64,000 bases of DNA, from IMG/VR virus record IMGVR_UViG_3300036770_004723, positions 62,001-126,000 of that record; one strand, 5' to 3'. Position numbers and translations under genes: made by a program. The notes beneath the pieces are model-generated. The model saw nothing but the letters and a program-made list of their open reading frames with translations, was not told the origin of the DNA and did no database searches. How positions within the stretch are numbered: the first letter of the stretch is position 1; every line of letters begins with the position of its first letter. Positions 16,133 through 27,930 of this stretch are shown one piece after another.

Positions 16133-19100
16133 TCAGTTTTTAGCCTTTTTCTTTTTGGCCGATTTTTTAGTTTCGGCAATAGAAGCGTTCATTAGCTTTA
16201 TATACTTATTTACAGATTCACTCAATGAAGAGGAAATACGCGGATTAGGATTTTTTAAATCTTTCTTCCAACCTTTAATATCAGCCTGCGCAGTCTTTAG
16301 CTTATCTTTAATAGTATTAAGCTCTAGCTTAGCCAAGCTACGCAACTTTCTTTCAATAATATAGGTTGCGCGTTCTCGATCAATCTTTAATGTTTTTGCT
16401 GCGTAGGTATCTGGATCATCTTTGTCCAAAGCCTTTTTCATTACCTCCAATACTTTATCTTTATTTATAACAGCAAACATTTGTGTTTCATATTCCCAAA
16501 TGTCACGCTCACGTTTGCTAATAACGTTTTCGAGATATTTTTGTTCTAAAACTATGCGGTATTTTACCCATTGGGTAATGTAATTACTAAAGTTTACATA
16601 AGCAAACTTTGTTTTCGTTTCATCGACATGGTTAACTACTAAACCTAAATTGTAGAATTGACTACCAGTTAAAATCTTTTTAACTTTTTCAGCTAAATCA
16701 TACAGGCCGTCGTCGTCAACACCGCGTTTAGGTACAACGTAGTAATATGCTCCGAATGCGCCAGCGTTCGGTCGCTTATCACCACAGTCGCTTACCCAAC
16801 GACTTACTCCAGGTAATTCACGAATTTTATCTCGCTTCTTTTCAACCATTTCTTCAGATTGAAAACCAGGTGCATAAGAAACAATTTCAATGATTTTATT
16901 TTTATAGTCAATATTTATCTTAGGGCGATATTTTATTGCCTTAGCTCGACCTGTTTTAATAAAATCTTCTAGTTCTTCTTTGGTAGAAACACATTCAGAT
17001 CCAAACGGCGCATTTATTCTTAAATGCTTGACACATTCTTCATCCGTAACTTTGCCTTTATTCAAAGCAATTTCAACCAACTTTGCAACACCTTCAATTT
17101 CAAAACTTGGATTACAGGCACGAACGCCATAGGCAATACCACCTTCGTTACCAATCAATAACATTGTTGGAAGCAATGAAGGCAAATATAATGGAATATC
17201 TTCACTGTCATCGAAGTTTTTAATTCTGGGAACAACTTCAAGATAACCACTATCAAGTAAAAACATTTTTGCGTAGTCGGCTAATCGCACTTCGGTATTA
17301 TGTACAATCATACCGTTCGCTGTATAAGAATTACTCACAGGAACAGTGAGATCGTAAGTAGGTTCATCTCCTATATACTCGATACGTTTGATAGGCACTA
17401 AGAAATAGTTCTTATCTAAAATATTAGTCAGTTTATCCACAAAAGTAGGGAAATATTTCCCTACAAATTTACCGACCTGTGTTAGCCAAAGTTTTAAAGA
17501 TTCTAAAGTCAATGGCATACTGCGTCCAGATAGTCCATATAGCATAGAGGCTATGTACTTAGGAATTGGATTGCCTTCTTCATCTTCTTGTTTACTCAGA
17601 ATGTCTTCATAATAAGATCGCACAACTTCAGGTAAGAAACTTAGTTTCTGATTATCATACGCCGAATTGAGTACATTACCGCTTTTACGTTCAGATAAAA
17701 ATCCGATTTCAGATTGAAATCTGTCGTGCATTAGTTTACTGCATAGATAAAGAGTGTCTTTAGTTTGTGCAAAAGGTAATCCAAATTTAGATACTAGAAT
17801 CGTCTGAAGTTGATCTAAAAGTTTGGAACTTTTGGATGTATACGTAACGCCGGACGCATGTGCAGATCCATCTCCTTCAAATAGTGAGGAAAGAAATGAA
17901 ACCATCTCGACTTTACTCGACATAAGTACGCATAGCGGAACTTCTTTCTCACGAGCAACACACGGAAAAATTCCATTAGCAGATAAAAAAGAAATTAAAT
18001 GCGTACTATTTATAGTACATTGGGCATACGGACGTTTAGCCCAATTTATACCATCAGGCTCACGCCATGTGACTGATACATGTACGTTTTCAAATAAAGA
18101 TTCAGTCAATTCTACAAATAAATCAACCATATCTTTATCAGAATTCATAAATTGGACTGTGTGTTTAGTAATGCTACCTTCTGAAATAACCAAACCTAAC
18201 CAAGTGGCGAATTCCGAAGACATTTTCTTGGGGAGACCTAATATCTTCATGGAAGAACTTCTACCTTCAATATCAGGCTGGTTTAAAAGTTTTGATCCTT
18301 TAGTCCATTTAATTTTAGGATCTCTTTTATAGCAAACTATGTCTCCTTCAGAAATATCTTCAATAGTTTTCCAACTAAAGTCTAGATTAGAATCTAAAGT
18401 AAGTAAAGGTTCATTACTTGTACCTTTAATTTTACCTAAGCGAGTTTCAACTTCAAAGATCTCACGAACACCACTGTCTAACCAGTGTGTAGCTAATTCA
18501 ACACCATCACGCGATTCAACTTTCAAAGAAATTTCTAGTTTGCGTTTAGGTGTCTTGCCTAAGACTTCAGGTATACGTCCAATAGGAAGTAAGCCTAATT
18601 CAGAACTAACTAAAGTATCAGCGGTAAAACAATAACGCTGGGCGGCAGCATTATCAATCGGTGAACCCCAGTTTCCACGACCTTGCGCAAGTTTTGGAAA
18701 AGTATTTGCAATAGTAACTAACGCGCCATAGCAGGCGCTATTATGCGCAAGCATTACTCTTAAACTGTTATCTTGTGAATTACGTCCAGTAGCAATCAAC
18801 ATGTTTTCATTACCTTTAACAGTAAAATCATACATTGGAATTGCTTTTTTACTTTTAACCAGTTTAATACTACGTACTGCTAAATATCCAGCAGTAGGTA
18901 ATCCTTCAATATAATCTCCATGATGTGAGGCATGTTCAGATCTATCAAGAACTACGATATTGTCCGGTCTATTATTTTCACGATCACCGTCACTATGATG
19001 ATAAATTTCGTCAGTGTCTTTATCATCATACAAGTAAGCTCCAGACAACTCATGAAGATTACAAGATACATGCGTATTCAGCGAAAGTTTATGGTAAGAT

Positions 19101-19747
19101 TCTCTTAAGATCTGCCCACCTACCAATTGCTGACCTACCTCCAAATTTTCTGTACTAATCCATTTACCTTCAACAGACATAAATGGATGGTTGCCAGTTG
19201 CTTTTACTACATCACCATTAGAAAGTTCAATATGATAAATGTCTTTAGTAACTTGCCCTACTCTAAATGAGTGCGCTAAAGCAGGCTCAATTATTTGTTT
19301 TTCTTCATTGTAAGACCAGACCCATATAGGATCTGATCCTAAAAGGTTTTTAATTTTGCGTACAGATCCATCACAACCTAACACACGAGTATTACCAGAT
19401 AGGCAATCGCCATGAGGGTGGTATTTACCTATGGTATCACCAATAACACGGGCAGATTTTTTAAAATCTGATCCATGTAAATTAAGTTTGTGCATTGCAT
19501 AAATCAAATGCCTGTGTACAGGTTTAAGTCCATCACGAAATTCTGGAACAGCTCTATCTTTTACAACATACTCACCATATTCAAATAAATTTTCTTTTGC
19601 AAAAACAGACATCATTGCAATAGAAATTTTGCTCTGTTTAATCGTGTTAGGTAAAACAAAATCGGTTTTAGTTGCCGGAAGTTTTTTAACTTTTTTTGTT
19701 TTAATTTCACCCAGCTCTACTCTGCCAGTCTTTTTTGTTTTTTTCAT
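16133..19747 (-). CDS. gyrA: Type IIA topoisomerase subunit A (GyrA/ParC-like, no beta-pinwheel CTD), two inteins
   Basis: DRAVPEFRDGLKPVHR, KSAR, GKYHPHGD|S, AAQRY|TE; start set at ATG 19747 because the -10 element lies at 19783-19788; about 537 aa after splicing. Confidence 0.93.
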   Translation of the reverse strand: MKKTKKTGRVELGEIKTKKVKKLPATKTDFVLPNTIKQSKISIAMMSVFAKENLFEYGEYVVKDRAVPEFRDGLKPVHRHLIYAMHKLNLHGSDFKKSARVIGDTIGKYHPHGDCLSGNTRVLGCDGSVRKIKNLLGSDPIWVWSYNEEKQIIEPALAHSFRVGQVTKDIYHIELSNGDVVKATGNHPFMSVEGKWISTENLEVGQQLVGGQILRESYHKLSLNTHVSCNLHELSGAYLYDDKDTDEIYHHSDGDRENNRPDNIVVLDRSEHASHHGDYIEGLPTAGYLAVRSIKLVKSKKAIPMYDFTVKGNENMLIATGRNSQDNSLRVMLAHNSACYGALVTIANTFPKLAQGRGNWGSPIDNAAAQRYCFTADTLVSSELGLLPIGRIPEVLGKTPKRKLEISLKVESRDGVELATHWLDSGVREIFEVETRLGKIKGTSNEPLLTLDSNLDFSWKTIEDISEGDIVCYKRDPKIKWTKGSKLLNQPDIEGRSSSMKILGLPKKMSSEFATWLGLVISEGSITKHTVQFMNSDKDMVDLFVELTESLFENVHVSVTWREPDGINWAKRPYAQCTINSTHLISFLSANGIFPCVAREKEVPLCVLMSSKVEMVSFLSSLFEGDGSAHASGVTYTSKSSKLLDQLQTILVSKFGLPFAQTKDTLYLCSKLMHDRFQSEIGFLSERKSGNVLNSAYDNQKLSFLPEVVRSYYEDILSKQEDEEGNPIPKYIASMLYGLSGRSMPLTLESLKLWLTQVGKFVGKYFPTFVDKLTNILDKNYFLVPIKRIEYIGDEPTYDLTVPVSNSYTANGMIVHNTEVRLADYAKMFLLDSGYLEVVPRIKNFDDSEDIPLYLPSLLPTMLLIGNEGGIAYGVRACNPSFEIEGVAKLVEIALNKGKVTDEECVKHLRINAPFGSECVSTKEELEDFIKTGRAKAIKYRPKINIDYKNKIIEIVSYAPGFQSEEMVEKKRDKIRELPGVSRWVSDCGDKRPNAGAFGAYYYVVPKRGVDDDGLYDLAEKVKKILTGSQFYNLGLVVNHVDETKTKFAYVNFSNYITQWVKYRIVLEQKYLENVISKRERDIWEYETQMFAVINKDKVLEVMKKALDKDDPDTYAAKTLKIDRERATYIIERKLRSLAKLELNTIKDKLKTAQADIKGWKKDLKNPNPRISSSLSESVNKYIKLMNASIAETKKSAKKKKAKN
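17297..18631 (-). mobile_element. GyrA intein 2 (445 aa, LAGLIDADG endonuclease) right after the catalytic Tyr
   Basis: RY|CFTADT...WLGLVISEG...FLSSLFEGDG...IVHN|T; same site as mycobacterial GyrA inteins. Confidence 0.95.
18740..19405 (-). mobile_element. GyrA intein 1 (222 aa, HNH motif)
   Basis: HPHGD|CLSGNT...ATGNHPF...HHSDGDRENNRPDN...LAHN|S. Confidence 0.93.
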
Positions 19748-19782
19748 AAACTTTTCCAGTTCCGTAGATAAATACGTCAAGC

Positions 19783-19841: not shown

Positions 19842-20275
19842 CACAGTAAACTTGGTAAACCTTTAGGCAATATTACTTTTAAAAAAGCTGTATACAGTGG
19901 ACGATCAAAAGGAGAATTTGAAGAAATATAAGAAATATACGATTTCATATCAGGTAGCTTCAAACAGCTCAAAGTTTTTTCATTTGAAACTTTTATAGCT
20001 TCTTCAGGAATTAAAACAGAATTAGTGTTCAACCAAGCAAGACCTTCTGTGAAGACACGCGGAACCGAACCAATCAATTCATTTGGAGGATATTTTATAA
20101 AAAATCCTTGACTATCTATAATTGTCAAGGCTGCTTGATGTAGTTTTGTATCAGCTAAACATTCAAGCTTTGAATTGTATTCTACTTTAGATTTTACCCA
20201 TGACACATCGTTCTGTAAAACGCCTTGCGAAAAAAACATGTATACGTATTTTTTACTCATTAAACACCTCAACAA
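19841..20275 (-). CDS. Hypothetical protein
   Basis: ORF between gyrB-C and gyrA. Confidence 0.6.
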   Translation of the reverse strand: MLRCLMSKKYVYMFFSQGVLQNDVSWVKSKVEYNSKLECLADTKLHQAALTIIDSQGFFIKYPPNELIGSVPRVFTEGLAWLNTNSVLIPEEAIKVSNEKTLSCLKLPDMKSYISYISSNSPFDRPLYTAFLKVILPKGLPSLL

Positions 20276-20655
20276 ATATTGTATAAACTATTTTGAGTGA
20301 ATGGAAGAAGTGCCATCTTTTTCTTAAAGATTTCTCTTGATCCGTAATTATTTTTTATGTTAGCTCTAATTGATTTAAGATCAAGCAGTGTTTTCGTATC
20401 CCAATCACTAGCTTCAATACTAATGCGATCAAGTACATTTATTATAATGCTGGATACTCTGTTTACTTTTTTAGGCCATACACATTTTATTATATAACCA
20501 CTGTCATCAAGAATAATAAAAGAAAGTTTTTTAACTCTGTGATCTAAATGATTTACCTTCAACCAAAAAACTGAAAGACTACTATTTTGCATGTAGTCTG
20601 GATTCATTTTAAACGGAGTAAAACTCAGATCCACAAGTAAATAGTAGTTTTTCAT
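20269..20655 (-). CDS. Hypothetical protein
   Basis: IILDDSGYIIK resembles IIDSQGFFIK of the neighbouring ORF; possible paralogs. Confidence 0.6.
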   Translation of the reverse strand: MKNYYLLVDLSFTPFKMNPDYMQNSSLSVFWLKVNHLDHRVKKLSFIILDDSGYIIKCVWPKKVNRVSSIIINVLDRISIEASDWDTKTLLDLKSIRANIKNNYGSREIFKKKMALLPFTQNSLYNIC

Positions 20656-20662
20656 AACTCTT

Positions 20663-21403
20663 TTAATCCGATTCAGTTAGACCTAATAGTTTTCTACGTG
20701 CTGAAGCATCTTCACCAACAACAGATTTAAAGAAATCTAGATCTTGTTTTACACTATCATATTCAATCTGAATAAGATTACGGTTAGTTGGATCGAACGC
20801 AATCGCCTCTAAAAGATCTGCGTTAGTTTCTCCCCAACCTTTAGCACGGAATACACTTCCCTTAGGTGCATTCTTAGGCAGCTGCTTTAAACATTCCTCA
20901 AATGAATCACCGCTGTAGTGTTTGCCATCAACCAAAGCATTGTACAAACTTGCTTGAACAACAAACAAACGTCCTTCCCGAATGAAATCTGGAAGCAACT
21001 TATAAAACAGTGCAATCAATAGTGTATTGATGTGTGAACCATCTGCGTCAGCATCTGCAAGTAACAAGCAAACTGCTGCACGTAGATTCTTGGTGCTGAA
21101 TGTTGGATTATCTGCTTTAACATCCAAACTTTTTATATCAACACCGAGACTTGCCAAAATATCTTGAATACGATCATTAGAAAGCAACTTAGGTAAACTA
21201 ACGTTTAAAGCATTCGGAATTTTACCACCGAGTTTCAATACTTCTTGATTGTAACCACGCGCATTCTTAGCGGAATTATGAACTACCGCTCCATTACCTA
21301 AACAGAAATTATGATTCTGCGTTACAGTTAGATCGTATACAGGTACAGGATTATCCAGCTTAATAGTCCGGATCGACCTTACCTTTATTGTTGATGGTGT
21401 CAC
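20663..21403 (-). CDS. gyrB: GyrB C-terminal gene: 43-aa C-intein plus 203-aa TOPRIM/tail extein
   Basis: AAAGGGGA SD then GTG at 21403; PVYDLTV..NHNF..NGAVVHN|SAKNAR...LGGKIPN...DADADGSHI...RAKGWGE. Confidence 0.92.
   Translation of the reverse strand: MTPSTIKVRSIRTIKLDNPVPVYDLTVTQNHNFCLGNGAVVHNSAKNARGYNQEVLKLGGKIPNALNVSLPKLLSNDRIQDILASLGVDIKSLDVKADNPTFSTKNLRAAVCLLLADADADGSHINTLLIALFYKLLPDFIREGRLFVVQASLYNALVDGKHYSGDSFEECLKQLPKNAPKGSVFRAKGWGETNADLLEAIAFDPTNRNLIQIEYDSVKQDLDFFKSVVGEDASARRKLLGLTESD
21275..21403 (-). mobile_element. Split intein, C-half (IntC)
   Basis: Blocks F and G, terminal HN followed by Ser+1; no N-terminal intein blocks. Confidence 0.92.
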
Positions 21404-21455
21404 ATGAATCCCCTTTAACAATGATAATTTAGACTTTTAATAAATAGGAGTTTAT

Positions 21456-22661
21456 ATGAACCTAATCAAGCTACATGCACAAGTATTAAAATTTCCAAAA
21501 GAGCTTAAAAAGATTCTGACTATGTTTATATCAAACAGAAACAGACGAGGTTGTAATGCTTTGCTTAATAAGCCTAATTCCAATATAGGTAAATTACTAC
21601 GTGATTCGTTTAAGTCCCCTATAAATAAGATTGCTATTTCAGATCTACATACAGCGTTAACAGGTGAAGCTTCTGCCGTATGTTTAAGAAAAGGATGTAC
21701 AAACAAAACAAATTACTGCTATGCCGACCGCAAATTTCGAGCGTGCTGTTCTAAGAAATGTGCAAACATATCAGGTTATACTCAAGCTAAACGTGAAGAA
21801 GTAATGCTTGATCGTCACGGTGTAAAAAACCCATACCAAATGCCTTCTACTAAGAAGAAAATTGAGGAAACTAATCTCAAAAAATATGGCGTAAAAAATC
21901 CTTCTTCGTCTGAAAAAGTAAAGCTTAAACGTAAGAAAACTTTTCAGGATCGTTATGGTATAAATTCACCAATGGAAAGTTCTGAATTTAAAGACAAACA
22001 AAGAGCCGTACTTTTAGAAAATCATGGTGTAGATAATCCAATGAAGTCTTCTAAAATTCGATCTGAAATGTCAGAAAGATTTAGAATGAAGCATGGTGTA
22101 ACTAATCCAATGCAAGTTCAAGAATTCGTAACTAAATCTCAGAAAAACTACGAATTGGCTTGCATTAAAAAGTATGGAGTACGTAATGCAATGCAGTCTC
22201 CAGAAATTCTTAAAATATGGTCCAGTGCGCAATCAAAAAGAACTGAAATTTCACTATGTGGTACAACACTAAATCTACAAGGCTATGAAGAACATGCGTT
22301 AAATTGTCTTTACCGATCAAAACCTTTCAAGTCAATAACTAATGATCCTACAAAGATGCCTCAGGTCAATTACACAATTAACGGTAAGTCGAGGGTGTAT
22401 CTGCCTGATGCTGCAATCAAAATGTTTGATGAATCTATAAGAGTGATCGAAGTAAAAAGCTGGTACACACTATCAAAAAAAGACAACTACTACAAATTTC
22501 GTGCAGCTACTAAATTTTATAACTCAATAGGTGTCGATTTTATTCTTGTAATCGTAGACGACAAAACAGGCGCATTAAAGATCTTATTTAATCCATATAA
22601 AGGGTTAAGATCTTTAATACGCGCAGCGAAAGTTCTTAGCTCAGGCCGTCGAACTTGGTAA
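21456..22661 (+). CDS. Free-standing putative homing endonuclease, antisense inside fractured gyrB
   Basis: GGAG SD; Cys motifs (CCSKKC), six [KR][YH]G[VI]x[NS][PA] repeats, C-terminal YLPD...VIEVK PD-(D/E)xK domain. Confidence 0.85.
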   Translation: MNLIKLHAQVLKFPKELKKILTMFISNRNRRGCNALLNKPNSNIGKLLRDSFKSPINKIAISDLHTALTGEASAVCLRKGCTNKTNYCYADRKFRACCSKKCANISGYTQAKREEVMLDRHGVKNPYQMPSTKKKIEETNLKKYGVKNPSSSEKVKLKRKKTFQDRYGINSPMESSEFKDKQRAVLLENHGVDNPMKSSKIRSEMSERFRMKHGVTNPMQVQEFVTKSQKNYELACIKKYGVRNAMQSPEILKIWSSAQSKRTEISLCGTTLNLQGYEEHALNCLYRSKPFKSITNDPTKMPQVNYTINGKSRVYLPDAAIKMFDESIRVIEVKSWYTLSKKDNYYKFRAATKFYNSIGVDFILVIVDDKTGALKILFNPYKGLRSLIRAAKVLSSGRRTW

Positions 22662-25600
22662 TGTGATCTTCTACTGTAAGATCTTTTGCTTTAGTATATT
22701 CACTTCCAGTCAACCACAGATGATCTGGTGTACACAGCCAAACACTGTTATCTTCCAAAGTAACCTCAATAAGTTCATCCACGTATTTAGTTATACGTGG
22801 ATGTTCTAGTAGTGATATCTCAAAAGCGTCTTTTTCAATCGAATAGCTAACTCCTTCACAAACAAAACCTCTTTCATACATATATACAAGTTCTTCGAAA
22901 GTAATTGTATTCCCGTTCGACAATTTTACAGGTGTACTTGCAATAAAACAACCTCCCGCAGAATCGCCCTCCACCAAGTATAATTCGCGTTCATGAGGTT
23001 TGCAGTTTGGTGCTTCATAGAGTTTGACAGGTAAACTGCCTTGACTCTTTTTGACCTCGCTCATTCCTTTCATGACTTTTGCAAGATCTTCACGCGAAGC
23101 AGCAACTTCAGATGCACGTTTAATAATTGCTTTTGCCAGACTTTTGTTTTTCTTAAAGAATTCCGTTAAAGGCTCTGTTAAAAGATCCGTAACTTCATTG
23201 TCAATTTTACTTACAAGTTTATCCTTTACCTGTCCGCTAAACTGAGCGCTGTTCATTTTCCAGTTTATTAAGGCAACGGCACCAACATACAAATCATCTG
23301 GTTTAAATGCGCCAGATTTTTTAGGCATATAATCTTTTAAGGCTTTCGACATAGCTGCACGGAAACCTGTTACGTGTGTACCATGATCAACTGTTGGGCT
23401 ACTGTTTACGTAGCTACGAAATAAATCTGTGTCGTGGTAATTGGACCACTGAATAGCTACCTTTAATCTGCCTGAATCGAATTCGAAAGGCTTACCTATA
23501 CCTTCAAGCTCACGATCTTGTAGAATGTTTCCAATTATACCTGATAAACCTTTATCATTGTAAAATTCTTTGATTTTATTTGTTTCAAGATCGTGTAAAG
23601 TCAAAAGAAGTTTAGGGTTCATGGTACTCATGAACTTTAAATAATCTTCAACTATAGTCGGCTGTAAAATAGCCTGAGTGTATGTTTTTAATTTTTTTGT
23701 TCGGTTAGCGTCAACGCTGATCACACTTTGGTCAGGAACAAAGCGAACAATAGATCCTAAACGTTTATACTTTTTCTTGATAGTAGCTAGATAACCAAAT
23801 TGTTTTTTCAGAAAAGAATCAGAAACTTTTTTAACTTCAGTTATTGCTTTACCACAACTAAAGCCTTGGTAATACCATTGATTTTCACGGCAAGTCCAAA
23901 CTTCAAATTCTTTACTTATAGCATTCAGCGCAGAAATCCCGACACCATGAGTATTACCAACAAACACACCACTAGCTAATAAGTAGGTATGATCATTTTC
24001 AACACTCAGCCCGTATACAGGAACCTTGTCAACTTTTTTGATTTCAACAGAAACAACTTTATGGTTACGTTCTTGAGCTAATGATGCAAGTTCTGAATTC
24101 GAAGAACACGAATCAAAATATTTAGCCAATTCAACACCAGTTTCCCAGTTCGGACTGCCAGCTGTACGATTGTTTTCATACCAATCTTTATCTATATGTC
24201 CTACTTCTGACAAGCAAGCATTCAATGTAATCAAAAAACGAGAATACGCAGTTTGTTTACGTCTGTCTGTGTAATCAGAAACTTTTTGTTTGGCTTCTAA
24301 TCTACGTTGTTTGGCTTCAAGCTTAATTCTTCTGTTTTCAGCCTCTACACCAGTATATAGAAACACATCTGGATTAAGTCCGTGAGCAACACAGTCAACA
24401 AAACGTCCAATCGTAATATATTTTAAAACGGAAGCAGCATTTAAAGTTTTAGCTGATTTTAAAATGGCATAAATTTTGTTGAAGTCTAAGTCCAATAATT
24501 CTTCCTGAGTTAATTTTTGATCAAAAACAAAATTCAAAGCTTTACCTACAATTCGTTTTGCAGTCATGAACTCTGAGTTATCAAAAATCATTGAATTGGC
24601 AGATAGACCAACTTCGTAATCTAACGAATCAAAAAATCTCTGGCCAATTTCTTGTTTCTTATCAAGTCGATCTTGGAAATAAGCAACAGTATCTTCTACG
24701 TACTTTCTGAAAGTAGCAGGCTTATCAAAATAATATTTTAAAGTTGACCAGCTAGGAGCGCCATGAAACCTGTTAGCTTCGTAAAGCTCTTTATTAATTC
24801 GTCCAAATTTTACGAGACAACGGCTACCAATTTTAATTGCTTTGCCTGTAACTTGCTTGAATATAAAATCTGGATCTGTATTTAGCTCTGTAAGCATTTC
24901 AGATTTTAAATGAGCAGTTTCTTTTACGAAATCCATCCAAGCAAACCATTTATCAGGATGTTCTTCATAATGTTCTTTCTGTGTAATCGCTTTTAAATTT
25001 TCATAACGATTATCAGTCTTATCTTCGTTTTCGTGGTGAACGTGAAGATTATCAATATCTTCACCGTTATACTCCATGACGAATCTGTGAACACGACCTA
25101 ATTCACGGCTAACTAAATAGCCATCTTTATCTTGTTTAAAATCCAATGATCTCAAGCTCATACCAGCTTTTAGTTTTTGAGCCTGAACTTTCTTTAAACC
25201 TGTTGTGTAGAATGGATGGTCAACTGTACATTCAATTGTTTCACCGTTATCAAGTTCAATAACTGCAAGTTGATCGACATACTTAGTTATTTGGACATTG
25301 TAACAGGCGTTGATTCCGACTTCACCTGTTTTAGGATCTAAACTAAACACATCGAAAGGTTTAGCGTCATCTTCAAAACGTGAATACAATTCTTCAAAAG
25401 TTGGAGTAGTTCCATCAAGCAACCTGACACGAGTTGATCCTACAAAACAGCCACCAGATGTTTCATAAGCACTACTGTCAAATTTGCCTCCAGCATGTAG
25501 CTCAGTCAGGATTAATGTCAATGCACTAATCTTTTTACCGTCGATCAACTTATCGCCTACAGGGATACCTTGCGCACAATCTGCAATAACGTATTCACCT

Positions 25601-25812
25601 ACTTTATTATTATAAGCAACGTAAATAGCATTGTTACGGCCAGCTTCGTATTCGTCACGGCTGTTTTCAACAGGCTCTTTGATAGCCCGAAACATCATGG
25701 CGTCACCTAATTCACCTAAATACATCGCGACATTGCCACGAACTTTATCTAGACCTAAAAGGGCTTTGATGTCATCTTCATTATATGTTTTAGTTTTTAA
25801 CTTTGCCATCAA
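22636..25812 (-). CDS. gyrB: GyrB N-terminal gene: GHKL ATPase and transducer, cis intein, C-terminal N-intein
   Basis: EPVENSRDE, GIPV, LHAGGKF, SGG|THGVG, GTHVTGF, FSGQVK, ELYLVEGDSAGG|C. Confidence 0.94.
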   Translation of the reverse strand: MMAKLKTKTYNEDDIKALLGLDKVRGNVAMYLGELGDAMMFRAIKEPVENSRDEYEAGRNNAIYVAYNNKVGEYVIADCAQGIPVGDKLIDGKKISALTLILTELHAGGKFDSSAYETSGGCFVGSTRVRLLDGTTPTFEELYSRFEDDAKPFDVFSLDPKTGEVGINACYNVQITKYVDQLAVIELDNGETIECTVDHPFYTTGLKKVQAQKLKAGMSLRSLDFKQDKDGYLVSRELGRVHRFVMEYNGEDIDNLHVHHENEDKTDNRYENLKAITQKEHYEEHPDKWFAWMDFVKETAHLKSEMLTELNTDPDFIFKQVTGKAIKIGSRCLVKFGRINKELYEANRFHGAPSWSTLKYYFDKPATFRKYVEDTVAYFQDRLDKKQEIGQRFFDSLDYEVGLSANSMIFDNSEFMTAKRIVGKALNFVFDQKLTQEELLDLDFNKIYAILKSAKTLNAASVLKYITIGRFVDCVAHGLNPDVFLYTGVEAENRRIKLEAKQRRLEAKQKVSDYTDRRKQTAYSRFLITLNACLSEVGHIDKDWYENNRTAGSPNWETGVELAKYFDSCSSNSELASLAQERNHKVVSVEIKKVDKVPVYGLSVENDHTYLLASGVFVGNTHGVGISALNAISKEFEVWTCRENQWYYQGFSCGKAITEVKKVSDSFLKKQFGYLATIKKKYKRLGSIVRFVPDQSVISVDANRTKKLKTYTQAILQPTIVEDYLKFMSTMNPKLLLTLHDLETNKIKEFYNDKGLSGIIGNILQDRELEGIGKPFEFDSGRLKVAIQWSNYHDTDLFRSYVNSSPTVDHGTHVTGFRAAMSKALKDYMPKKSGAFKPDDLYVGAVALINWKMNSAQFSGQVKDKLVSKIDNEVTDLLTEPLTEFFKKNKSLAKAIIKRASEVAASREDLAKVMKGMSEVKKSQGSLPVKLYEAPNCKPHERELYLVEGDSAGGCFIASTPVKLSNGNTITFEELVYMYERGFVCEGVSYSIEKDAFEISLLEHPRITKYVDELIEVTLEDNSVWLCTPDHLWLTGSEYTKAKDLTVEDHITKFDGLS
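22639..22950 (-). mobile_element. Split intein, N-half (IntN, 104 aa)
   Basis: DSAGG|CFIASTPV...CTPDHLWLT...AKDLTVEDHI then stop; blocks A and B only. Confidence 0.92.
23953..25449 (-). mobile_element. GyrB cis intein (499 aa, HNH) in the ATP lid
   Basis: SGG|CFVGST...CTVDHPF...HVHHENEDKTDNRYEN...VFVGN|T. Confidence 0.92.
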
Positions 25813-25814
25813 GG

Positions 25815-26174
25815 TTAACCTTCTATAAATCTTTCACTGAGAATTCTAATGCAAGTCTGTGTGACTATTTCATTTTTTTCTGGAAGAATATTTGAATTCA
25901 AATTCAAAACAAGTTCAGCATATTCTTTTAATATATCAGGATCAGTAATATCATTTATGGCTATTTCTGAAAAATTACTATCCATTGCTGTTACTTTAAA
26001 CAGCATTTTAGAATTAAGGCCATCACCATTTAAAGTAATAAGGAAAAAACAAGAATTTCTTTTTACTACACGAAAAATTTCCTTTTTTAATTCTTCGATA
26101 AGTTCTATGTGTTTACTTATAAAACTATGTGCTTCCAGTTCGGCAGCTTTGACCTTTCCTATTAACCAAGACAT
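25815..26174 (-). CDS. Hypothetical protein
   Basis: Coupled ORF. Confidence 0.6.
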   Translation of the reverse strand: MSWLIGKVKAAELEAHSFISKHIELIEELKKEIFRVVKRNSCFFLITLNGDGLNSKMLFKVTAMDSNFSEIAINDITDPDILKEYAELVLNLNSNILPEKNEIVTQTCIRILSERFIEG

Positions 26175-26584
26175 ATATTTTTGCCTATACGAGAAATAAG
26201 GTTTTTAGTTTTTTGTGTTACGTCGTTAATTATTTTTTCAGCGTTGTATCCACCGTCCTCAAGTCTTTTTACTAAAGGATTAAGAATATCTATAGCCGCT
26301 AAGAATCCGTTTTGTTTTTGTTCTAAAAGGGATAACTCAAGAGCGTAGGTAGATACAACAAATTCATGGTAGCATTTATCTTCTGGATCTAAATTAGATC
26401 CATTTATTAATCTAATAGATTTTAGATTATCTTGATTTAGACGAAAGATTGCTTTCTCTGTTTCTAGCAGATTAAGTTTATTTAAAAGTAAATGGTTTGA
26501 TAGAGTGGAGTAAATAGAGGAAATTTCCATAGAAGAGTTCAATATACAGTCTATATCATTAGAAAGCCCTAACAAATTTTCCAT
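26162..26584 (-). CDS. Hypothetical protein
   Basis: GGGAG SD. Confidence 0.65.
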   Translation of the reverse strand: MENLLGLSNDIDCILNSSMEISSIYSTLSNHLLLNKLNLLETEKAIFRLNQDNLKSIRLINGSNLDPEDKCYHEFVVSTYALELSLLEQKQNGFLAAIDILNPLVKRLEDGGYNAEKIINDVTQKTKNLISRIGKNICLG

Positions 26585-26662: not shown

Positions 26663-27097
26663 TTAATTATCAAAAGCGAATTCGTTTGATTTCTTTTTTG
26701 ATTTTTTATCGGCCTTTGGATCGGCTTTTTTGTCGGCTTTTTTGTCGGCTTTTTTGTCAGCTTTAGCTGGAGCTTTCTTGTCAGCTACTTTTTTATCAGC
26801 AGCTTTCTTGTCAGCTTTAGCTGGAGCTTTTTTGTCAGCTTTAGCTGGAGCTTTTTTGTCAGCTTTAGCTGGAGCTTTTTTGTCGGCTACTTTTTTATCA
26901 GCAGCTTTTTTATCGCCTTTTGCTGGAGCAGCAACAACGCCAGCTAAAGAATCGGCTTGCAGTTTTGTAGCAGCAGCCAAAGCGTCAGCTTGATCAGCTT
27001 GTTTAGCCAATGCTTCGGCTTGTTTACGTAAAGCAGCTGCTTGTTTAGAAGAAGCGTTCGCAGATTTATTTAAGGCAGAAATGGCTTGTTTACTCAT
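26663..27097 (-). CDS. Histone H1-like Lys/Ala-rich protein
   Basis: N-terminal Ala-rich coiled coil, tandem KKAPAKAD repeats. Confidence 0.8.
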   Translation of the reverse strand: MSKQAISALNKSANASSKQAAALRKQAEALAKQADQADALAAATKLQADSLAGVVAAPAKGDKKAADKKVADKKAPAKADKKAPAKADKKAPAKADKKAADKKVADKKAPAKADKKADKKADKKADPKADKKSKKKSNEFAFDN

Positions 27098-27183: not shown

Positions 27184-27930
27184 TTATTCTTCTTCTGACC
27201 ATTCTTCCTCTTCTTCATCTTCATCTTCATCTTCGTCAGATGAATAATTTTCTTCTAACCACCCACGAAGTTTATCTTCTGTCTTCAAGTATTTCGCCGG
27301 TACTTCAAGATCATTGTCTTTTACAAACTTTTTCAGTTCTTTTAAATCCATTTCGTCGAAGTCAGGAGCGTCATCTTCCTCTTCCTCTTCTTCGTCTTCA
27401 TCTTCGTCAGATGAATAATTTTCTTGCAAGAATTCACGAAGATCATCTTCGCTTTTTACTTTCTTAGGAACTTCAATATCATTATCTTTCGCAAACTTTT
27501 TCAGTTCCTTGAGGTTCATTTCGTCGAAGTCAGGAGCGTCATCTTCCTCTTCCTCTTCTTCGTCTTCGTCTTCATCCGAAGCAAATTCTTCTTGTAAGAA
27601 TTCACGTAAGGCGTCTTCGGTTTTTGCTTTCTTTGGAATTTCGATTTCGTTATCTTTACAGAATTTCTTCATTTCCTTGAGGTTCATTTCGTCGAAGTCA
27701 GGAACTTCCTCTTCCTCTTCTTCGTCTTCATCTGAATCTTCCTCTTCTTCCTCTTCCTCTTCTTCCTCTTCGTCTTTCTTTTTCTTTGACTTAGAAGGTG
27801 TACCTGAAGATCCAATTACAGCAGAAACTTCAGCAGAAGTAACAGCACCTTCTTCAATTGCTACGCCTAAAAGTTCCAATAAAGCCGATGCAACTGTTTT
27901 GCCTGAAGATGCTTTTGATTTTTTAGCCAT
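27184..27930 (-). CDS. Hyper-acidic protein with three HeH/Rho-N/SAP-like repeats
   Basis: 3x PDFDEM[ND]LKE[ML]KKFxKDNxxE[IV]P...EDxLR separated by poly-E/D. Confidence 0.85.
   Translation of the reverse strand: MAKKSKASSGKTVASALLELLGVAIEEGAVTSAEVSAVIGSSGTPSKSKKKKDEEEEEEEEEEEDSDEDEEEEEEVPDFDEMNLKEMKKFCKDNEIEIPKKAKTEDALREFLQEEFASDEDEDEEEEEEDDAPDFDEMNLKELKKFAKDNDIEVPKKVKSEDDLREFLQENYSSDEDEDEEEEEEDDAPDFDEMDLKELKKFVKDNDLEVPAKYLKTEDKLRGWLEENYSSDEDEDEDEEEEEWSEEE

Follow-up and report, generated by a model that had tools for sequence, protein, structure and literature searches.

How could a phage obtain a working gyrase B subunit from a gene that is broken within its Toprim-coding region, with a gene of the opposite strand lying in the break? 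The question is raised by the gyrB locus of an uncultured jumbo phage represented by the 286.6-kb IMG/VR contig IMGVR_UViG_3300036770_004723, of which we analyzed a stretch of 64,000 nucleotides (the window; all coordinates refer to it). When both strands are read, gyrB appears as two minus-strand genes with a nuclease gene between them on the plus strand. The interpretation that we consider highly probable is a fractured gyrB carrying a mobile cassette, which consists of the N-terminal half of a split intein (IntN), an opposite-strand gene for a predicted homing endonuclease of the PD-(D/E)xK/DUF7487 type and the C-terminal half of the intein (IntC), placed between the codons for EGDSAGG and S/TAK. 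The split gyrB is a real and recurrent feature and almost certainly functional, and the two parts of GyrB are probably joined after translation. A sequence-only reading of this DNA had proposed a naturally split intein at EGDSAGG/SAK, and the motifs, the profile matches and the alignment with a contiguous relative described below support that proposal.

Exteins of the interrupted gyrB gene

The upstream gene is an open reading frame (ORF) of 1058 amino acids (22636-25812, minus strand) whose product ends with ...VEGDSAGG/CFIASTPV...CTPDH...FDGLS, where the slash, here and below, marks a predicted splice junction. Both gyrB pieces are assigned to GyrB by their domain order of transducer, Toprim and C-terminal tail (Pfam DNA_gyraseB, Toprim and DNA_gyraseB_C) and by PHROG 543. 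The exteins add up to 121 + 334 + 203 = 658 amino acids, and all of these residues align in BLASTP with the GyrB proteins of phages NCTB and PaBG, both of which are intein-free. The join between the exteins is exact: residue 954 of the upstream product lies opposite NCTB residue 470 and the first C-extein residue opposite NCTB residue 471, with no loss and no duplication in the same BLASTP alignment. The 658-residue protein had been proposed before, and the sum is correct, but the proposal omitted a requirement: a contiguous (cis) intein of 499 amino acids with an HNH domain, located further upstream in the same gene, also has to be excised. This cis intein is missing from the GyrB of NCTB, PaBG and the related contig L004.

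A megablast search with the 16-28 kb part of the window returned no match among phage records, and relatives were therefore sought at the protein level. Two related IMG/VR contigs, L004 and L005, are 73% identical to the window in the C-terminal part of GyrB, and neither contains the cassette. L004 has the gene order of the window and encodes an uninterrupted GyrB of 660 amino acids with the junction EGDSAGG-TAKNAR; in a script comparison, its empty site is identical to the joined flanks of the window at 52 of 72 nucleotides.

Two halves of a class 1 intein

The sequences between the exteins, taken together, hold every residue of a class 1 intein. Block A is represented by Cys955 directly after EGDSAGG, and block B by the T-x-x-H motif, which reads TPDH in the window; the cysteine, the threonine and the histidine are invariant in 11 relatives. 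Block G reads VVHN/S, and its His, its Asn and the +1 Ser/Thr are invariant in 7 relatives. IntN and IntC were searched as separate pieces. The Pfam intein splicing domain PF14890 is matched on both gyrB pieces, with the C piece alone scoring below the gathering threshold. The IntN of the window by itself matches the structure of the NrdJ-1 split intein with E=0.003, and a profile of 11 family members matches the NrdJ-1 intein 8ubs with E=3.6e-15, with the Pab PolC and DnaE inteins ranking next. For the IntC profile, the matches were to the C-terminal ends of two solved inteins, the Pho RadA intein and the Npu DnaE C-intein. The lengths of the two halves (Table 1) are typical of split inteins.

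The break can be placed with the help of P0221, a single-chain GyrB of 772 amino acids with a contiguous cis mini-intein, which aligns to both halves. Its residues up to 532 share 49% identity with the tail of the N-extein and IntN of the window, and its alignment to IntC and the C-extein starts at residue 557. The natural break thus falls in the canonical endonuclease-insertion loop, between motifs N4 and C2.

The separation of the halves described in the sequence-only reading, about 1.2 kb with an antisense endonuclease gene in between, is borne out: the IntN stop codon and GTG 21403 are 1232 nt apart, and the plus-strand ORF between them encodes 401 amino acids. The separate downstream gene likewise holds up. 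Its GTG 21403 is preceded by a Shine-Dalgarno sequence, AAAGGGGA, with a 5-nt spacer, and its IntC ends with VVHN/SAKNAR. No Shine-Dalgarno sequence precedes TTG 21421, the mechanical ORF start of this gene, and the homologues begin at the position equivalent to GTG 21403. The residue counts are also exact when repeated on the minus-strand sequence, with 19 D/E versus 8 K/R in IntN and 4 K/R versus 2 D/E (both D) in IntC. The net charge of IntC is only +2, within the range of 0 to +2 among its relatives, and the charge complementarity proposed for an acidic IntN and a basic IntC therefore rests mainly on IntN.

The antisense nuclease gene

The gene between the halves overlaps the IntN gene convergently, 3' end to 3' end, by 26 nt. 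Its product matches Pfam DUF7487 (E=3e-35) and, weakly, TnsA-like_N (E=2e-5), together with PHROG 3339 and 12131, both of which are labelled 'homing endonuclease'. Distant relatives found by tblastn are free-standing and often multi-copy genes of large phages, and some are annotated as homing endonucleases, for example F-LimIII. Across an alignment of 73 homologues, no variation occurs at Q275, E278, D318, E332 or K334, and four cysteines are at least 90% conserved. D318, E332 and K334 form the canonical PD-(D/E)xK signature, which is intact in the window.

The AlphaFold model of the protein has a predicted local distance difference test (pLDDT) score of 92 and consists of a helical N-terminus, a four-Cys element, tandem helical DUF7487 repeats and a C-terminal alpha/beta PD-(D/E)xK domain, with a beta-sheet core at residues 263-378 (pLDDT about 90). 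The best Foldseek matches of the model are all PD-(D/E)xK proteins, namely Cas4 SSO0001, Hjc, TnsA, RecE and lambda exonuclease; they are weak, with a best E of 1.3e-3, and their template modeling (TM) scores are low because the query is a multi-domain protein. A search of the PDB with the nuclease sequence found only TnsA, with E about 0.4. No Vsr or GIY-YIG match is found in Pfam at E<=0.01, and no Vsr structure is present among the 50 best Foldseek matches. The structural matches are consistent but statistically weak, and we therefore claim neither a specific nuclease subfamily nor a relationship to Vsr. No transposase partner genes lie near the nuclease gene.

Recurrence of the cassette in other phages

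The split-gyrB cassette is neither a one-off occurrence nor an assembly error, and its presence in many independently assembled loci excludes chance. A protein search with the IntC-bearing piece returned six other proteins of 232-248 amino acids, each with an IntC of 38-46 amino acids followed by GyrB. Their contigs were supplemented by others located through the nuclease and through IMG/VR. In total the cassette is present in at least 10 independent metagenomic contigs from Logan, ENA, JGI, NCBI and IMG/VR. The loci with this layout are L007, L008, L013, L015, L019, L020, L038/L039, L040 and L041, of which L038/L039 is a GenBank metagenome-assembled genome (MAG) and L013 and L040 are cut by a contig end; L010/L011 is partial. 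The order is the same in every locus that bears the nuclease: the N-terminal part of gyrB with IntN, an antisense DUF7487/TnsA-like gene of 383-402 amino acids, then IntC with the C-terminal part of gyrB. All relatives that have a nuclease gene have it in antisense. By called gene coordinates, the convergent overlap of this gene with IntN is 9 nt in L008, 24 nt in L038 and 65 nt in L015; L007 and L041 share the 26 nt of the window. Seven loci have 52-102 nt between the nuclease ATG and the start of IntC; in L041 this gap reaches 238 nt and contains a small ORF. Small and highly charged ORFs of 50-53 amino acids are called beside the nuclease gene in L040 (1475-1627) and L041 (587-748), and may be spurious.

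The loci are divergent, with identities of 32-60% between C-exteins, 47-69% between IntC sequences, 35-50% between IntN sequences and 28-48% between nucleases; in most locus pairs IntC is better conserved than the extein. The nuclease gene is not present everywhere. In L021 (3136-6272) the split GyrB intein is kept, no nuclease gene is found and the halves are separated by 176 bp. L014 (1-1698) also keeps the split, with two small ORFs of 72 and 115 amino acids on the same strand in place of the nuclease gene. The C piece of L021 contains a further mini-intein in the DxD region of Toprim, DPDPDG/PFIGNT...VVSSN/CHIN, with Pro as its apparent first residue, which is unusual.

An exhaustive profile search covered 1.84 billion representatives of 50%-identity clusters and gave 6638 matches, the best 150 of which were classified by hmmsearch domain coordinates. 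Among these 150, GyrB N-parts with this IntN at the C-terminus account for 37 and related inteins in other exteins for 83. The remaining 30 are GyrB proteins in which IntN is internal: true cis mini-inteins, larger cis inteins, and sequences in which IntN is extended in frame by about 220 amino acids, some with HNH, up to the end of the protein. P0221, P0224 and P0226 carry closely related cis mini-inteins at this GyrB site. In P0191, P0262, P0240, P0261 and P0141 the GyrB N-part and IntN are followed in frame by about 220 residues, after which the protein ends without IntC or Toprim; an HNH motif is present in this extension in P0261 and P0141. These five proteins may represent a split form with the endonuclease fused to IntN. 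A tree of IntN sequences (124 columns) is poorly resolved, with unsettled bootstrap support, and its 'cis' label mixed true cis inteins with IntN-HNH fusions that have no C-extein; it therefore allows no firm conclusion on the number of split origins.

A scan of one genome per prokaryotic species with a four-sequence IntC alignment recovered the split GyrB intein in a single MAG-binned contig, L042, which is probably of phage origin. The scan gave no evidence of a cellular split GyrB; apart from L042 it matched only cis inteins, located in other proteins, DnaB among them. Because dozens of divergent split GyrB inteins are present in public metagenomes, the feature is less singular than the sequence-only reading supposed. 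The suggestion that the split intein might be new stands in that we found no published natural split GyrB intein: the surveys and toolkits searched report GyrB inteins only in contiguous form or omit GyrB. It has to be tempered in that the element itself is common in public metagenomes.

Expression signals

In six of eight loci, namely the window (region 21404-21455), L007, L013, L015, L038 and L040, the nuclease ATG is preceded at a distance of 25-35 nt by a motif resembling ATGATAATTT. Tentatively, this motif could act as a -10 promoter element that belongs to the cassette. A promoter scan also flagged GATAAT in the divergent gap as a candidate -10 box. The scan predicts no terminator between the gyrB halves, which would permit read-through from one half into the other.

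Feature coordinates and neighbouring genes

Table 1. Features of the fractured gyrB locus in the window, in order of position
Feature	Position	Strand	Evidence
gyrB C-extein, 203 amino acids, starting SAKNAR: rest of Toprim including the DADADG acidic cluster, and GyrB C-terminal domain	20663-21274	-	Pfam Toprim, DNA_gyraseB_C; 50% identity to NCTB 471-673
C-intein (IntC), 43 amino acids from GTG 21403 (49 from TTG 21421), ending GAVVHN	21275-21403	-	sequence, motifs, profile match
Divergent intergenic region, 52 nt, with AGGAG (nuclease gene), AAGGGGA (IntC gene) and the ATGATAATTT motif	21404-21455		sequence
Free-standing predicted homing-endonuclease gene, 401 amino acids	21456-22661	+	own AGGAG ribosome-binding site; Pfam, PHROG, alignment, AlphaFold
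N-intein (IntN), 104 amino acids, Cys1...TPDH (block B)...FDGLS; stop codon 22636-22638	22639-22950	-	sequence, motifs, profile match
gyrB N-extein segment 2, residues 621-954, transducer and first Toprim motif, ending EGDSAGG	22951-23952	-	Pfam DNA_gyraseB E=5e-27; aligns to NCTB 132-470
Contiguous (cis) intein with HNH endonuclease domain, residues 122-620, CFVGSTRV...VFVGN/THGVG	23953-25449	-	Pfam Intein_splicing, HNH_3, PT-HINT
gyrB N-extein segment 1, residues 1-121, start of ATPase region, ending ...ETSGG	25450-25812	-	55% identity to NCTB GyrB residues 12-131

The cis HNH intein of gyrB (23953-25449) terminates with Gly-Asn, versus the usual His-Asn. An HNH intein at this first site together with the split intein forms a similar architecture in L015. 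The neighbouring gene for GyrA (16133-19780, minus strand, 1215 amino acids) contains two contiguous inteins. One occupies residues 126-347 (nt 18740-19405), has an HNH domain and is bounded by HPHGD/C...AHN/SA; the other occupies residues 384-828 (nt 17297-18631), has a LAGLIDADG domain and is bounded by AAQRY/C...VHN/TE. The GyrA of L004 is intein-free and 547 amino acids long. Upstream of gyrB, two genes on the minus strand (26663-27097 and 27184-27930) encode low-complexity proteins, both conserved in L004. One is rich in Lys and Ala, with repeats of the KADKKAPA type, and the other has three repeats, each of an acidic Glu/Asp run followed by a conserved module of about 40 amino acids.

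Proposed mechanism and alternative explanations

We propose that the strongly acidic 104-residue IntN and the 43-residue IntC would associate into a HINT fold and splice by the class 1 pathway: thioester formation at Cys1, attack by the +1 Ser, cyclization of IntC Asn43 and ligation of the exteins into one GyrB. The Toprim glutamate of the N piece and the DxD cluster of the C piece would end up in one chain, and splicing of the upstream cis HNH intein as well would yield the 658-residue protein. The antisense nuclease would cut the intein-free gyrB of co-infecting relatives near the conserved EGDSAGG/TAK codons, and recombinational repair would copy the whole cassette into the cut allele. The distribution of the cassette bears on homing: it is missing in the close relatives L004 and L005, and its position is fixed across divergent hosts. 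The nuclease gene is probably driven by its own promoter in the short divergent gap, while the downstream gyrB half would be most simply expressed by read-through from the upstream half.

Several points weigh against this interpretation. Splicing, the activity of the nuclease and its target site are all predicted from sequence, and the phage is uncultured. The weakly basic IntC (+2) makes the argument from electrostatic pairing weaker than the sequence-only reading implied. The Foldseek E-values of the modelled nuclease domain all exceed 1e-3. The promoter scan identified none for the IntC gene and showed no enrichment of promoter-like sites over shuffled sequences, and expression of the second gyrB half is an assumption.

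One alternative is that the GyrB pieces are never ligated and function in non-covalent association, like the gp39 and gp60 of T4 that result from the MobA insertion, with the intein halves serving only as association tags. In T4 and its relatives a topoisomerase large subunit split in Toprim by a homing-endonuclease cassette does work without splicing (10.1101/2022.08.31.505936), and the split is retained after loss of the nuclease gene in L021 and L014. Mere dimerization tags, however, would not be expected to keep Cys1, TxxH, HN and the +1 Ser/Thr invariant between exteins that are only 32-60% identical, nor does this explanation sit well with an IntC conserved above the extein in most pairs, or with a closest solved relative, NrdJ-1, that is an active split intein; we regard it as unlikely. 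Loss of the intervening sequence before or during translation fares worse still. Removal of the 1.2-kb insert from the RNA in the manner of an intron, or its translational bypass, would restore a cis mini-intein of about 147 amino acids of the kind seen at the same site in P0221, P0224 and P0226, and phage topoisomerase genes are the classic home of bypassing. Yet an Rfam scan of 20000-26500 at E up to 1 produced no intron family and only two chance-level eukaryotic matches, 1.2 kb far exceeds any known bypass, the insert carries an intact and conserved protein gene on the other strand, and the IntN stop codon and the IntC Shine-Dalgarno sequence and start stand at positions conserved across relatives. 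We find it hardly credible.

The locus could also be a casualty rather than a working gene, with gyrB inactivated by insertion of a selfish nuclease and decaying as a pseudogene while the phage uses the host gyrase, or it could be an artefact of assembly. Four or five selfish insertions in gyrB and gyrA mark the locus as a hot spot for parasitic DNA, and the window does come from a metagenome assembly. We nevertheless judge both versions very improbable: the two pieces are intact ORFs with ribosome-binding sites, the exteins are well conserved on both sides of the break, and the architecture recurs in no fewer than 10 assemblies that are independent and differ in sample and source. A similarly small probability attaches to the idea that the antisense ORF is no homing endonuclease and is a defence or transposition nuclease that landed there by chance, with the split intein spreading by other means. 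Its best Pfam nuclease match is indeed to a TnsA-like domain (of transposon Tn7), though weak, and both its activity and its target are predictions. Against this, orthologues that are 38-48% identical (402 amino acids) are found in precisely this place and orientation in all full loci examined, the wider family is multi-copy and free-standing in large phages with members annotated as homing endonucleases (F-LimIII), and transposase partner genes are absent nearby.

Beyond the fractured gyrB with its trans-splicing intein, a broader reading may be entertained, which we regard as possible but rather doubtful: the cassette would be a distinct, self-contained class of mobile element in which the reversed orientation of the nuclease is functional. 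Under it, the nuclease gene may have its own promoter in a divergent gap of 52-60 nt and may be restrained by antisense read-through from the essential gyrB message, and the convergent overlap may supply the IntN stop codon. The family may have switched repeatedly among a cis mini-intein, an in-frame endonuclease, an IntN-HNH fusion, a split form with antisense nuclease and a split form without nuclease; if so, it would be a natural series for how inteins become split. The cassette could also be a source of a fast Cys1/Ser+1 split intein that is orthogonal to gp41-1, NrdJ-1 and DnaE.

Comparison with known systems

A counterpart by site is the Ssp GyrB intein of Synechocystis PCC6803. The paper on its S11 form gives GVFVHN as the end of the C-intein, SA as the start of the C-extein and GG as the end of the N-extein; the corresponding last six residues in the window are GAVVHN. 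The two inteins apparently occupy the same GyrB insertion point, as had been suggested from the sequence: the published junction residues fit, and the support is indirect, the comparison being by those residues only. The Ssp GyrB intein is a contiguous intein of a cellular gyrase, and its split forms are engineered and cut at a non-canonical site. At the insertion site studied here the intein forms range from contiguous, either as a mini-intein or with an in-frame domain, to split, either with an antisense nuclease gene or without one, so the long-discussed route from contiguous to split can be compared directly. The abundance of these forms in metagenomes is an asset for studying how inteins split and for mining orthogonal split inteins.

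The closest solved structure by sequence is that of the NrdJ-1 split intein (PDB 8ubs/9omb), likewise a natural split intein from a fractured phage-like gene. Cys1 and the CTPDH block B are common to both. NrdJ-1 differs in that only about a quarter of the IntN residues are identical in the printed alignment, and the extein context here is GG/C...N/SAK. Since the halves are related to the fast NrdJ-1 at only about 25% identity and exist in dozens of natural variants, they form a pool of candidate orthogonal split inteins for protein engineering.

The insertion of MobA between T4 genes 39 and 60 provides a parallel in host protein: a mobile cassette with a homing endonuclease divides a phage type II topoisomerase large subunit, a GyrB homologue, within Toprim (10.1101/2022.08.31.505936). 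In both systems the metal-binding residues are distributed over two polypeptides, and in both the split can outlast the endonuclease. T4 has no intein: its pieces bear cassette-encoded tails and remain non-covalent, and a 50-nt translational bypass comes with the cassette, whereas the tails in the window are intein halves. The C piece of the window shows no in-frame gap relative to NCTB. MobA is a same-strand HNH enzyme, and the T4 insertion lies at amino acids 466-473 of Topo2L, not at EGDSAGG. The same 2022 study mentions in passing one metagenomic T4-like Topo2L with an intein containing a VSR endonuclease (10.1101/2022.08.31.505936).

Natural split inteins are also known from other replication proteins. 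The jumbo phage vB_PaeM_MIJ3 has a split PolB intein with an HNH gene, which is the fractured layout in a cultured phage (PMC6892783). It and the cyanobacterial split DnaE concern host proteins other than GyrB; the MIJ3 endonuclease is of the HNH type, and the cyanobacterial DnaE halves stand at distant loci without an endonuclease. From the sequences analyzed here, type II topoisomerase B subunits would be added to the few enzymes known to arise by natural protein trans-splicing. A working topoisomerase of this phage would require four splicing events, two in GyrB and two in GyrA.

The general kind of the locus is that of the fractured genes described by Dassa, London, Stoddard, Schueler-Furman and Pietrokovski in 2009 (PMC2677866), whose loci are gp41-1, gp41-8, NrdJ-1, IMPDH-1, NrdA-2, DnaE, ligase and TerL; the gp41, NrdJ and IMPDH cases that the sequence-only reading named as having an intervening endonuclease are all listed there. 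As in those mostly phage loci, a conserved gene of DNA metabolism is broken in place into two co-oriented genes, each piece with its own stop or start, the break lies at the canonical endonuclease-insertion loop, and a free-standing endonuclease gene stands between the halves. The charge pattern of a negative N-intein and a positive C-intein is shared with NrdJ-1, IMPDH-1 and NrdA-2. The 2009 survey covers eight host enzyme types, including helicase gp41, IMPDH, DnaE, NrdA, NrdJ, ligase and terminase, with no mention of gyrase or topoisomerase (PMC2677866). Its endonucleases are GIY-YIG or Vsr-like, and their 3' ends overlap the IntC start in 15 loci (PMC2677866). This classic layout is also seen in our material in L022 (1936-5264) and L023, where terL is fractured by a related split intein and a same-strand HNH/AP2-like endonuclease gene overlaps the IntC start.

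The window departs from these systems in three respects. Its host protein is a gyrase/topoisomerase B subunit; its nuclease is a canonical PD-(D/E)xK enzyme, by prediction, with DUF7487 repeats in place of a GIY-YIG or Vsr-like one; and its nuclease gene, unlike the co-oriented genes of the 2009 loci, lies on the opposite strand, overlaps the 3' end of IntN and has a start that diverges from that of IntC. For fractured genes, joint transcription of the endonuclease gene and the downstream gene half has been discussed, and in the published model the start codon of that half is provided by the invading, co-transcribed endonuclease gene (PMC2677866). The conserved antisense orientation departs from this model and raises the question of how the second gyrB half and the nuclease are expressed. 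The locus is thus a fractured gene in the sense of Dassa et al. (2009), and what it adds is a new host protein, a new nuclease family and a conserved antisense orientation with convergent overlap.

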